Source of the DNA: Chara braunii
Taxonomy: Eukaryota > Plantae > Charophyceae
Assembly: GCA_003427395.1 (NCBI GenBank)
Contig: BFEA01000024.1
Coordinates: 500,044 to 564,043, forward strand
DNA length: 64,000 nucleotides
Direction: 5' to 3'
The position numbers and the translations under genes were made by a program. The notes under the pieces are model-generated. The model searched no databases. It saw only the letters and a list, made by a program, of their open reading frames with translations, and was not told the DNA's origin. Positions 12,547 to 52,235 of the stretch are shown piece by piece; the first letter of the stretch is position 1, and each line of letters starts with the position of its first letter.

Positions 12547-13592
12547 CTAAGAAAAACCTTCGTAAGCTATCCTAGTTCGACAGCGTGCGATATCGTCGAC
12601 TGCTTGGTCTTTGACAATATAATCAATCCCCTCCCGGTCACAAATTTTCTTCAAGTCAGGCGCCTTGAGATCGCTGAGTGCCCTGGCTTGAGTAAGGGCA
12701 TAGTCCACCACACCTTCACATGAGCATTCTGCTGAGCAAACCTTCGCAGGAGTCTCCAGTGCATCTGGACCGTCGCCTCCGGCTGCTGGTCTGACCTTTC
12801 TTGGAGTCCTAGAAATCCGACTTCCTGTCGCCCGGAGAACAACTGCATTCTTTTTTCCTTTCCTCCTATTTTCAAGCGCCTCGATTAGCTTCTCAGCTTC
12901 CTCCTTCACTTCATCTCTATCATCGTCAGATTCAACAATATAACTCCGAATGTCTCTCAACACTCGGGCTTCTTAATCTCGAAGGTCGATTGTAGAACTG
13001 GAGATGGAAGAGGCGAGAGGTGAGAGGGAGGAGGATGCGGAGGAGGAATGTGTGGAGCTATCAACGCCGTCTCTGTCCTTTGTGTCAGGATCCGTACGAT
13101 AGTCGCCTCTAGTCGAGCTTCCCGTGCTTCAGCATCACGTAACTTCTCACTTTCCCTCCTCTGCTCTTCTTTCCTCTTCTTTGATTCTTTCCTCTTCTTT
13201 GATTCCTCAACCTCACAAAGTTTCTTCTCTTCCTCTTCTTTCTCTCGCTTAGCGATGTGTCGAAGGAGATCTTTCATCTCAGGATCTTCATCAGTTCATT
13301 GCCGATTTGCCGTCTGCCAATAATTCCTCGAGTAGTGACCGGTCTTACCACAAATGAAGCAGGTGACCATCCCAAAAGATGCGGTCGGTACCCCACCTAA
13401 AGCAGTTACACCAGGTCCTCCAATGCCGCCGATCGGAGGCATACCACCACCCATATTCGTTGTGCCAAACCCTACACCACCTACGTTTGAAGCTCCGACC
13501 CCCATACTCCCAACACCCACTATATTCATCTTCGACTTCAAAGGGAGCGGTGCAAAACTCGAATCGCCTGGCGGATTACTGTGTAGATTCAA
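12547..13592 (-). pseudogene. PLE-1 ORF1: Gly-rich segment, Gag-like Zn knuckle, coiled coil, SAP/HeH-like C-terminus
   Basis: CFICGKTGHYSRNY (CX2CX4HX4C with the last C degenerate), E/K/R-rich helix, and LSDLKAPDLKKICDREGIDY. Split over three ORFs. Confidence 0.75.
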
Positions 13593-14110
13593 TCGAAATC
13601 TCGAAAAACGATGTTCATAACTGGCACGACATTCTTTTTATACAAGATTGAAGCCAGCCTAGTATACCTGGCCATTGGTGCTAAGATAACCCAATAAAGA
13701 GTCATGAGCAACCGCTCACTTCTCTTGATATAATCCATGATGTTCGCCCTTGCCCTCCTCGTACACCTGTCAGGAACTGTCAGCGTAAGATTATACTCTC
13801 GACCATTTGCTGCAGAACATGACGAAACATTCTTAGCCCCCACAAATCGTGGGAAGTACATCTGCATAACCTCAACGTCTGCGACCCACCCATCTTGCAT
13901 TTACCATTGTCGATGCCCACTCCTCGTACTCAACCCACCCTACTATCCCCACCAAATTACGTGACCACTTTATCGGCTCAAGCCGCTGGTTGTCACGTCT
14001 ACCCAAAATTCAGGGTAAAAGAACAACTCGCAAAACACTGCTCACACGGAGGACCAAAGCAAGTACAATTATACTTAACCCTCGTCGAACACCGCAATTT
14101 GTACGCAATC

Positions 14111-14155
14111 CCTCGACGCGTTTCGACCAGCACGTACACAGGTCTCATCAGGAGG
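14111..14155 (-). ncRNA. Minimal type I hammerhead ribozyme (PLE-1)
   Basis: Minus strand: CCUC CUGAUGA GACC-UGUGUACGUGCU-GGUC GAAA C GC GUC^GAGG. All core nucleotides are intact, and stem III is the palindrome ACGCGU. Confidence 0.92.
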
Positions 14156-14954
14156 CCCAACCATCCACCATCCAGATCAGAGGGAGCACTCCCTCCATGC
14201 GTTGTAGCACTAGATTGCCCAAAAAATTTATCCCTTCCCACACTTCCCTCCGTCCATTGTACCTTCCACACATCCCGCCCAGCACGATCCGTCATATCCA
14301 CGACAAACACTGCAGATCATTCCTCTCATAGCATATGGTTCCACAACCGCCATTGTCAGACAACAAAAGATCGCGCCTCAAAGAATCATCGGTGCTCGCG
14401 TGATACACCACGGTTGAAAAGGGCTTACAGTGATGGCGCAGGCCGATATATGCACGCTTGTTGCCGTGCTCTAGAATCCGCATATTTTTGAGTATTTTTC
14501 AAGGTGCCTAAAACATTCTTCCCGCCTAACAGAGCACTGACCCTGATCAGAGGGCCCAAAAAACATATACGATAAGTTCGGGTCCCTGTCCCGGAATAGT
14601 GCCCAAATACAAAAACGGTCCGCTAGCAGACCCGGCCAAACTGCAAACGGTCACACAGCTTATAGCTACAAATCAACAACACCTACCAAAAATTGTGGCA
14701 AAAAGGGTAATAAAATAAGAAAAGGTAAAAAATGGTAATAGCCTGAAACCGAGGTACAATGCATATCAACTCTCGGTACTGGAAAAGGGGAAGGGGAGGA
14801 GGGGGTAGTTCGGGTCCGTGAACAAGAGGGGTCAAGGAGGGGGCCGAGATCACGAGACTGAGATCCTTCTCTTATCATAATGGTGGGTGTACGTTTCAGG
14901 GATCAAAGACCCCCCAAAACCACCCATCACCTTGGCAAACCTTGCCAAGGATCC

Positions 14955-14985
14955 GAAGAAGAAGAAGAAGAAGAAGAAGAAGAAG
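14955..14985. repeat. (GAA)n microsatellite at the PLE-1 5' junction
   Basis: Direct reading of the sequence. Confidence 0.9.
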
Positions 14986-15057
14986 GACGGTCGAAGTTGG
15001 AGGAGGAAAAGGAACCTACCAGCGGAAGCCATATCTTCCTCTTCTCTTCTTCTCCTC

Positions 15058-15167
15058 AAATCTGAATGTCGCAAAATCCGAATGTCCCAAAATTCGAATG
15101 CCGCAAAATCCGAATGCCGCAAAATCCGAATGCCGCAAAATATCATGTCGTAATATCCCAATGTCGC

Positions 15168-15170
<3 letters not shown>
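15058..15170. repeat. ~16-bp tandem repeat (aatccgaatgYcgcaa) followed by (TC)n
   Basis: About 5-6 degenerate units are visible. Confidence 0.75.
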
Positions 15171-15221
<51 letters not shown>

Positions 15222-15222
15222 N

Positions 15223-15291
<69 letters not shown>

Positions 15292-15576: not shown

Positions 15577-16944
15577 GAGAGAGAAAGATGGAAAAAAACG
15601 AAAAAAGAGGATGAAGCCACAAGCAAGCTTCCTCCTTTTTTTTCCATTTTTTTCCCTTTTTTTTTCCCTTTTTTTTCCTTTTTTTTTTTTTTCAAAACAT
15701 GCGCGCCATAGCTACATGGTGCACCCTTGTCTCGGCTCGTGCCACTAGCGATGGCAGAGTCTTGACCACACTCTCCCTCTGCCATACACCCACGCGCACA
15801 CACACACAGACTCTTGCCCGCACACTCTCTGTCACACCCACGCACGTGCACACTCACACAATCTCTTGCTCGCTCTCTCTCTCTCTCTGACACACATGCA
15901 CACACAGACAGACATCCAAACGTCGTCCCATTTGTGTGTTTGTGTGTGTGTGTGTGTGTGTCTCTGTGTGAGAGAGAGAGAGCGAGAGAGAGAGCGAGCA
16001 AGAGTCTGTGGTGTGGCGATGAGAGAGAAAGAGCGACAGATAGACACCCAAATGAGAATGAACTTCCCGCTAGAACATGGCCAGATGCGTCCGACAGTGG
16101 TGTGGCGATGCCCACTGACCGTCCGCACGGCGGACCGAGCGCCAAACACTGGTGTGCCCGCATCTGACCGTGTTCTAGCGGAAAGTTCGTTTCGATCCAA
16201 AACGATTGCAAAATTAAATTGTCTTTTTTGTCTTTTGTTTTTTCTTTTCTTTTTTTGTTCATTTTTTTTCGGACCGACGCAAAAAGAAAGACAGCAAAAA
16301 AAAAAAAAAAAAAATCAAATTCACAGAAGAAAAAAACAGAAAGTCTTTTTTTTGTTTCGAAAACAAAACGAAAACAAAAGGCAAAAAAAAAAGCAAACAA
16401 AACAACATGCCAGAATGAAAAAATAAATAAAAATAAATAAATAAATAATCAAATAATCAAATAAGTAAAAAACAACAATACGAAACAAAACGACAAATTC
16501 TTTTTCTTTTTTAGAATACGAAACACAAAAACAAAAAATAAAAAAAGGGGGCCGGACATAAATCGACACGGAAATGCTATCCGACGGCGGGCACGTCGAG
16601 ATATTCATCCGCATCGACGCCCGCCGTGTACCCGGCCCCGTTGGCGAGGTCTCTCGTTTAGTGGCGCGCTGTGAACAATTCGGTACGCACGCCACTCTTC
16701 ATCCCCACCCGCCCTCGATCCCCTTCATCCGCCGGCCTGCATCAAAACTTCAACCTGATTCCGGCGCGCAGTGGAACACCGGCCTCCCCCCGCGGCCAAT
16801 GATGATTAAGGGTTAGGACAAAAAAAAANAAAAAAAAAAAAAAAAGTTTGGGCTCGGTTTATTTTGGGCCACGTTCAAGCTCGGTACTGAGCGTTCGGGT
16901 TCGGTCACGGAGCCCGAACGCGATGCTACGGAGGTTTGCTGGTA

Positions 16945-17125
16945 TATATCATCAAACAGAGCTGCTTTGTAAACCGTAGGTAGAGAGAGAGAGAGGAGGA
17001 CAACAGACAAGGGGTTGTGACAAACTGTTTCGTCGAAGTTTCAATGATTCATCAGGAAGCTGCACCCTCAATAGTCTACAAAATCCCCTAACTGATCAGT
17101 GATTATAATGTAAGTGATAATCCTA
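16945..17125 (-). ncRNA. Longest copy of the type III hammerhead repeat (HHR at 17021-17078, stem II mutated)
   Basis: Minus strand: tagactat t gagg gtgcag cttc CTGATGA atcat tgaaact tcgac GAAA cagtttg, followed by the family 3' end ending ...tttgatgatatata. Confidence 0.8.
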
Positions 17126-47121: not shown

Positions 47122-47331
47122 ACTTATTACTTGGATTTTCCTTTCACCACGAGGGTGGTCTCATGCACACAGATCACATACATTGATAGGAAGAAGAAGA
47201 AGAAGCGAGCGATTGCGACATGAAAAATCCAATAAGCTCAGTACAACAACCCATTCCTCTCTCCATCCTCAATGCATGCAAGCTCATACATGGCACATTA
47301 GTGTCAGTCTCCACCTACACACCTGCGGCTT

Positions 47332-47381
47332 CCCCCTACGCCGCGTTTCGATCAGTTGCCAGCTGATCATCATCAGGGGGG
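47332..47381 (-). ncRNA. Type I hammerhead ribozyme, PLE-2 3' pseudo-LTR
   Basis: Minus strand: CCCCC CUGAUGA U GAUCAG-CUGGCAA-CUGAUC GAAA CGCGGC GUA^GGGGG. Core intact, with an extra U after A9. Confidence 0.88.
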
Positions 47382-51880: not shown

Positions 51881-52185
51881 TACCTCCCAATTGCTATCGT
51901 TTATTCCCGTCCTCGCTCATTGCACGTCTAGCGACCACCGTTCTAGGTGTCCTTCCCAGTCAGTTATCGCCCCACTCCTCTTACTTGGAGTTTCCTTTCA
52001 CCACGAGTGTGGTCTCATGTACACAGATCACATACATTTATAGGAAGAAGAAGAAGAAGCGAGCGATTGCGACATGAAAAATCCAATAAGCTCAGTACAA
52101 CAACCCATTCCTCTCTCCATCCTCAACGCATGCAAGCTCATACATGGCACATTAGTGCCAGTCTCCTTCTACACACCTGCGGCTT

Positions 52186-52235
52186 CCCCCTACGCCGCGT
52201 TTTGATCAGTTGCCAGCTGATCATCATCAGGGGGG
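52186..52235 (-). ncRNA. Hammerhead in the PLE-2 5' pseudo-LTR, G12A variant (probably inactive)
   Basis: Same as 47332-47381 except plus-strand C>T at 52203, which turns GAAA into AAAA. Confidence 0.85.

Follow-up and report, generated by a model that had tools for sequence, protein, structure and literature searches.

A type I hammerhead motif beside a decayed Chlamys-type Penelope-like element of Chara braunii

Does a short stretch of the Chara braunii genome with the look of a self-cleaving RNA represent a genuine hammerhead, and if so, which element carries it and what would it do there? The question arises at positions 14155 to 14111, on the minus strand of the window, by which we mean the whole 64,000-nucleotide stretch of DNA that was analyzed. 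A sequence-only reading had proposed a minimal type I hammerhead in a second, highly divergent Penelope-like element (PLE) family. We examined the motif using our own parse, a descriptor scan, simulations, an Rfam search of a slice around it and a covariance model. Our reading, to which we give a probability of roughly 0.8, is that the motif is a slightly damaged copy of the terminal-repeat (pseudo-LTR) type I hammerhead of C. braunii Chlamys-2-like PLEs, lying in the 3' part of a 5'-truncated upstream copy; because the repeat is such a 3' part, the ribozyme comes to stand upstream of ORF1 of the main copy.

The motif and its host element

The catalytic core is complete at this site (C3 U4 G5 A6 N7 G8 A9, G12 A13 A14, A15.1-U16.1, H17), and both the G10.1-C11.1 pair and the GUC triplet are present. 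On this point our parse and the descriptor scan agree with the earlier claim of a type I hammerhead with all catalytic nucleotides, a GUC triplet and an ACGCGU palindrome, and the parse also gives the same predicted cut, at 14114/14115 on the minus strand. Helix I is open, helix III is short, and the full-length Rfam match is to the type I model. Across both strands of the window, the descriptor scan returned this full hammerhead match alone. In 1000 first-order Markov simulations of the window, which served as our control for chance, a motif whose helices I and II both reached 4 bp or more appeared 0.047 times per window, and none of the 1000 simulations yielded one that had a self-complementary helix III as well.

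Rfam found no hammerhead in the whole window at the gathering threshold, nor in a 1.1-kb stretch at E values up to 10. With a 78-nt slice, Hammerhead_1 (RF00163) matched 14109-14157 (minus) over the full model with 25.2 bits (E 1.1e-4), short of the gathering score of 34, as the model calls for a helix III closed into a hairpin. We consider the motif confirmed as a real type I hammerhead motif, with cleavage predicted from its sequence. Two other assignments were tried and rejected: a type III reading, since no upstream sequence pairs with the tract after GAAA, and a non-LTR retrozyme, since the motif is single-copy in the window (a search allowing up to 3 mismatches found no second copy) and forms no tandem unit. 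The features of the locus are collected in Table 1.

Table 1. Features of the hammerhead locus, its host element and the second Penelope-like element, in window coordinates.
Feature	Position	Strand	Details
Type I hammerhead	14111-14155	minus	own parse, descriptor scan, simulation, Rfam slice, covariance model
Helix I	14155-14152 with 14114-14111	minus	4 bp, CCUC/GAGG
CUGAUGA box	14151-14145	minus	
Helix II	14144-14141 with 14128-14125	minus	4 bp, GACC/GGUC, 12-nt loop between
GAAA box	14124-14121	minus	
Helix III	14121-14116	minus	palindrome ACGCGU, including U16.1
C17	14115	minus	predicted cut 14115/14114
3' tail complementary to loop 2 (14138-14131)	14100-14107	minus	8 bp: 6 Watson-Crick and 2 G-U
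5'-truncated upstream copy (pseudo-LTR)	13950-14985	minus	RT C-terminal tail, 3' UTR, hammerhead, 3' end
RT-tail repeat	14906-14962	minus	88% identical to 8287-8336 over 57 nt; encodes FFGSLARFAK
Simple repeats at 5' boundary	14955-15289		(CTT)n, 16-nt tandem repeat, (GA)n
Gag-like ORF1	12547-13592	minus	three pieces, two frames
ORF1 zinc knuckle	13296-13592	minus	PF00098, E 9e-5
ORF1 coiled coil	12957-13277	minus	
ORF1 SAP-like tail	12547-12963	minus	
ORF2 N-terminal part, GIY-YIG nuclease	11377-12294	minus	intact 305-aa ORF
Foreign repeat, microsatellites and assembly gap	10343-11500		interrupts ORF2; N 11113-11173 (61 N)
CxC linker and reverse transcriptase (RT)	8287-10330	minus	several frames, in-frame stops; ends at RT tail
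Hammerheads of the other PLE (47.1-52.7 kb)	about 52185-52235 and 47331-47381	minus	in both repeats

The host is, judging from its coding remains, a decayed Chlamys-type PLE. Its domain order, an N-terminal GIY-YIG nuclease followed by a CxC linker and a PLE-type RT, matches that of the other element in the window and of C. braunii proteins. In tblastn with the four ORFs of that other element the whole series aligned, ending at the RT tail near 8305, and this full-length homology at just 25-39% protein identity bears out the description of a second, highly divergent PLE. At the CxC site, VCTC aligns with ICKC in the same comparison. The Pfam match of the GIY-YIG nuclease is weak (PF01541, E 0.0074, below the cut-off); its ORF shares 32% identity with the other element and has 71 relatives by phmmer, the best of them at about 40% identity. 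A word-based protein search with this ORF, whose length filter excluded longer gene models, returned nothing at E ≤0.001, and a protein search with a spurious ORF spanning the ribozyme returned no candidate copies. The two parts of the foreign repeat (10343-10617 and 11262-11500) are 78% identical to 14183-14450 and 15775-16020 of another C. braunii locus, L002, in opposite orientation, and (TTGA)n, (CA)n and the assembly gap accompany this repeat where it interrupts ORF2.

The peptide encoded by the RT-tail repeat aligns with the RT tail of the window's other element. Because the RT tail recurs there, the hammerhead sits in a 5'-truncated upstream copy that starts within the RT tail, and its proposed placement between an RT-tail-derived repeat and ORF1 holds. 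Similarity between the main and the upstream copy stops after 57 nt, at the RT tail. By analogy with relatives, whose repeats end 140-210 nt past the cut, the 3' end of the upstream copy would lie near 13.9-14.0 kb. The 3' repeat of the main copy, in which a second hammerhead would be expected, is absent after the RT tail, and a tandem layout therefore cannot be shown at this locus. Helitron-like ORFs (6681-8030, minus; PF14214, E 1e-42 for the ORF at 6681-7406) lie about 250 nt past the RT tail, at the place expected for the 3' repeat. Chlamys elements target microsatellites (PMC8557442), and the simple repeats at the 5' boundary are in keeping with this.

Relatives, covariation and copy number

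The best protein matches of the element were hypothetical proteins of C. braunii. We compared 11 related loci of the C. braunii assembly GCA_003427395.1, with protein identities of 25-57%. Every one of these diverged loci carries a matching motif on the gene strand, as anticipated by the claim that its position is conserved across divergent families. Closest by whole-element tblastn are P0025 (43-57%), P0012 and P0013, and in their loci a type I hammerhead lies 1.0-1.15 kb upstream of each gene model; the closest relative, L005, aligns to the locus at both the RT tail and the hammerhead. A covariance model trained on 12 copies and used to search 320 kb returned 19 motifs at E 5e-4 or better, all on the gene strand and 7 of them outside the training set.

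Motif pairs occur in L011 (9563 and 15065), L008 (8909 and 14516) and L004 (7033 and 11985), within direct repeats that are 92-97% identical and, where readable, end 140-170 nt past the cut; in these three loci and in the window's other element the paired motifs are 4.85-5.6 kb apart. L002 also has two motifs, 9.4 kb apart. Active relatives hold the motif in both repeats, one unit (4.9-5.6 kb) apart. The two hammerheads of the window's other element sit in repeats that are 95-96% identical, the repeat ending 210 nt past the cut. Its 3' hammerhead, in which an extra U separates positions 9 and 10.1, is intact, and its 5' hammerhead should be inactive because G12 has changed to A (CAAAA for CGAAA). 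The stems at 14155-14111 had been called wholly unlike those of this other element; they do differ, but helix I does so at one pair and helix III shares ACGCG. In relatives in L001-L003, one helix II pair has changed from A-U to G-C.

Among the 19 copies the core is constant by our parse, obvious dead copies excepted. Helix I occurs as CCUC, CCCUC, GCCUC or CCCCC, always opposite a strand that matches it; helix II keeps 5-8 bp although no two subfamilies share its sequence; and helix III is self-complementary throughout (ACGCGU, ACCGGU, ACGUGU with G-U pairs, or ACGCGGCGU). As for the inner pair of the palindrome, 12 copies have GC, 4 have CG and 2 have GU. The exact helix II sequence of the window copy had no match in the first four loci examined. 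Covariation across family copies was the check that the sequence-only reading had named, and its outcome is positive: helix II is rewritten yet paired, and helix III stays self-complementary.

Pairing in helices I and III reaches 94.7%, and it falls to 37-56% when the 3' partner is slid by 1-3 columns. Their covariation score is 0.318 against 0.148 in shuffled alignments, with 0 of 500 shuffles as high, a significance that the shuffle overstates since the copies share descent. Because copies of one repeat family are related in this way, part of the pairing statistics reflects shared ancestry. Stronger arguments than the shuffle control come from the slid partner and from a helix II that is rewritten throughout. 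Helix II pairing was read from our own parse, program alignments being out of register for several subfamilies; the value of 50% paired in the program alignment is accordingly an understatement, with stems of different length placed out of register. Comparison across these loci shows that a diverse Chlamys-2-like group has a conserved, covarying predicted type I hammerhead in each of its two terminal repeats.

Individual copies have decayed in different ways. In the 5' copy of L002 (8147-8198), C3 has become U, and the two ends of helix III read TG and CA where the 3' partner has CG, changes that fit CpG decay with the palindrome still kept. In L008 both copies (8909-8958 and 14516-14565) lack G10.1, with U-U at the base of helix II, and the 5' copy additionally has C3 changed to A; both keep a loop 2, GUGUACGCG, that is almost identical to the majority form of the window motif.

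Copy number was estimated from the contigs of one whole-genome run placed at 85% likeness. Contigs cover ORF1 and the 3' UTR flanks at a depth of 8-10 and about 14088-14167 at a depth of 170-311, a roughly 30-fold excess of motif copies over the flanks, and several contigs depart from the locus at the motif borders into flanks unlike the element. At 14129, 290 of 311 contigs have T for the plus-strand A (minus U to A), which extends helix II to 6 bp; at 14132, 225 of 311 have G for A (minus U to C), which turns a pseudoknot G-U into G-C. No core position varies at 5% of depth or more. The RT-tail stretch at 14878-14950 forms a second island kept in many copies (depth 356, against 8-10 nearby), and the 650 nt between RT tail and hammerhead are single-copy at 85% likeness. 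That the motif (at least 85% identity, about 65-80 nt, about 30 copy-equivalents) heads an undescribed non-coding, retrozyme-like Chlamys offshoot in this streptophyte alga is, in our estimate, a long shot; if true, its ribozyme would be of type I, pseudoknot-locked and of the dimer type, and would be in use beside type III short elements.

A family of such short elements with type III hammerheads is present in the window at 16943-17123, and copies were seen at 17019-17055 (minus) of the window, in L006 (17501 and 22165) and in L009 (19495). The copies in L006 and L009 share a 13-nt string, GCCUCCUGAUGAG, with the Chlamys-2-like type I motifs, which hints at a common origin of the type III and type I motifs.

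The copy at 14155-14111 is itself probably silent, because its element is broken (frame changes, in-frame stops, an insertion and no 3' repeat), its helix II contains a U-U mismatch absent from most family copies, and no RNA was seen from the locus. In three oligo-dT runs sampled at 6-13%, 1-2 reads each covered the motif, all of them less than 90% identical to the locus. The RNA reads covering 14129 show the majority letter, and these runs, at that coverage, gave no pile of read ends at 14114.

Pseudoknot, predicted action and rival explanations

Loop 2 of the motif is complementary to a tail, 14107-14100, that begins 8 nt after the predicted cut. In the relatives each subfamily has a loop 2 complement of its own, 7-10 nt past the cut (CACGC with GCGUG, UGCACAC with GUGUGCG, and GCGG with CCGC are examples). 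With position constrained, cognate loop/tail pairing among 10 representatives scored 5.05, against 3.99 ± 0.32 for permuted combinations, and 25 of 20000 permutations reached or exceeded the observed value; when position was left free, the search for complements to loop 2 gave no separation between cognate and non-cognate flanks. About 40% of hammerheads, across all three types, are reported to have pseudoknots in which 4-8 bp join the loop of stem II to sequence past stem I, and the stem I/II contacts so formed are required for fast cleavage and make many hammerheads fast as monomers (PMC3088659). The functional unit of the ribozyme would then span about 14157-14100, the predicted pseudoknot included. 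Because loop 2 pairs with the tail, the motif is not minimal, contrary to what had been claimed; nor is it so in the sense of Cervera and de la Pena 2014, its helix III being a 6-nt palindrome with no extra nucleotide.

When flanks are included, the minimum-free-energy fold favors a hairpin at about 14118-14083 (minus). This predicted hairpin lies directly past the cut, with CGUCGAG paired with UUCGACG and with an inner stem, and it would lock away the cut site together with helix I's 3' strand and some of the pseudoknot tail. It may serve as an off-switch or be a product of chance.

We propose that a read-through transcript of a partial tandem would fold two ribozymes, in each of which the pseudoknot between loop 2 and the 3' tail would hold helices I and II parallel. 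Because helix III is just a short palindrome, two copies could pair through it, within the same transcript or between two transcripts; a short palindromic helix III has been read as a sign of dimer action (Forster et al.; Cervera and de la Pena, PMC4209133). Each copy would cut after GUC (GUA in some subfamilies) and free a unit-length RNA; compared with the DNA unit, this RNA would be permuted by the 140-210 nt that separate the cut from the 3' end. Such processing of tandem transcripts, which had also been suggested from the sequence, is the standard hypothesis for the role of these motifs, and other roles would not exclude it.

How far do the data favor this account over others? A chance match to the hammerhead consensus would agree with a loose descriptor (helices of at least 3 bp), which finds 0.36 chance matches per window in the Markov simulations, and with the Rfam score below threshold. 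It is refuted by homologous covarying motifs in the same place in all 11 related loci, the roughly 30-fold excess in copy number also speaks against it, and we give it next to no weight. The pile of contigs just over about 14088-14167, several of them continuing into unlike flanks, would suit a separate and abundant non-coding hammerhead element (retrozyme-like or SINE-like) that lies upstream of the PLE and is no part of the terminal repeat, as would the presence of the type III short-element family in the same window. What makes this very unlikely is that the repeats holding the motif in the relatives stand on either side of the coding unit, with the motif always in sense and at similar distances, and that L005 aligns to the locus at the RT tail and the hammerhead; moreover, the abundant short elements in the fetched loci carry a different, type III motif. 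The terminal-repeat hammerhead of a Chlamys-2-like PLE is the reading that we retain for the origin of the motif.

Its mode of action and its role can be disputed separately. Stabilized by the pseudoknot, the ribozyme might act as a monomer, in which case the palindromic helix III would be no dimer interface but a side effect of a CpG-rich tetraloop. This would accord with the fast monomeric cleavage that pseudoknot contacts give in many hammerheads (PMC3088659) and with the CpG-decay pattern at the helix III ends of the 5' copy of L002. However, ACGCGU cannot close a stable hairpin (one or two pairs with a 2-4-nt loop), and the inner pair switches from GC to CG yet leaves the helix self-complementary, which matters only if the halves pair; we hold purely monomeric action to be improbable. 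A main role other than unit-length cutting strikes us as unlikely, though by no means far-fetched: cleavage might give the RNA an uncapped 5' end, so that ORF1 can be translated without a cap, or ends whose ligation yields a circular RNA template. Every element examined has the motif a few hundred nt upstream of ORF1, self-cleavage in 5' UTRs drives cap-independent translation in RNA viruses and in plant cells (PMC13725137), and circular intermediates have been proposed for Penelope-like elements (PMC4209133). Against a role in translation, the motif is found equally in the 3' repeat, where translation makes no sense, an objection tempered by the repeat structure, which entails that location anyway.

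Comparison with known systems

Three Chlamys types were described in C. braunii by Craig et al. 2021, among them Chlamys-2_cBra, which combines a canonical hammerhead with a zinc-knuckle ORF1; Naiad and Chlamys elements lack canonical hammerheads apart from two subclades, one of them from C. braunii (PMC8557442). This kind of hammerhead-bearing element was thus published in 2021, and the locus is a decayed further member. As a discovery it matters little, since the Chlamys subclade of C. braunii is already published with its hammerheads and the locus is a dead copy. Because the majority of Naiad and Chlamys elements do well with no hammerhead (Craig et al. 2021, PMC8557442), the ribozyme may be dispensable or parasitic in these elements. 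Of more use is the series of relatives: at least eight diverged subfamilies within one genome have kept the core, a self-complementary helix III and the pseudoknot between loop 2 and the tail, with helix II rewritten each time, and they form a natural mutant series for the dimer action of PLE hammerheads and for the contribution of the pseudoknot.

The element shares with Chlamys-2_cBra and the hammerhead-bearing C. braunii subclade (PMC8557442) the species and an ORF2 composed of an N-terminal GIY-YIG nuclease, a CxC linker and an RT, and with Chlamys-2_cBra also an upstream gag-like zf-CCHC ORF1, a canonical hammerhead in the 3' region or pseudo-LTR, and an insertion next to a microsatellite. 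It differs in being decayed and without a 3' repeat, a comparison made with the published description, and its best protein relatives are just 40-57% identical. With the type I hammerheads of canonical PLEs and of metazoan satellites and retrozymes (PMC4209133) the motif has in common the topology, a short palindromic helix III, a place in both flanking repeats, and extremely variable helices around a constant core. It does not match the min-HHR of metazoan PLEs and fits what the same paper describes as canonical type I (Cervera and de la Pena 2014, PMC4209133). Unlike those hammerheads, helices I and II here appear to be linked by a base-paired pseudoknot and not by loop-loop contacts, and the host is a streptophyte alga whose element has a permuted EN-RT domain order. 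A Watson-Crick contact between the stem II loop and sequence past stem I is also common to the pseudoknot-stabilized hammerheads of Perreault et al. 2011 (PMC3088659); those examples are mostly bacterial and some mammalian, whereas here the contact is predicted within a retrotransposon repeat and together with a dimer-type helix III.
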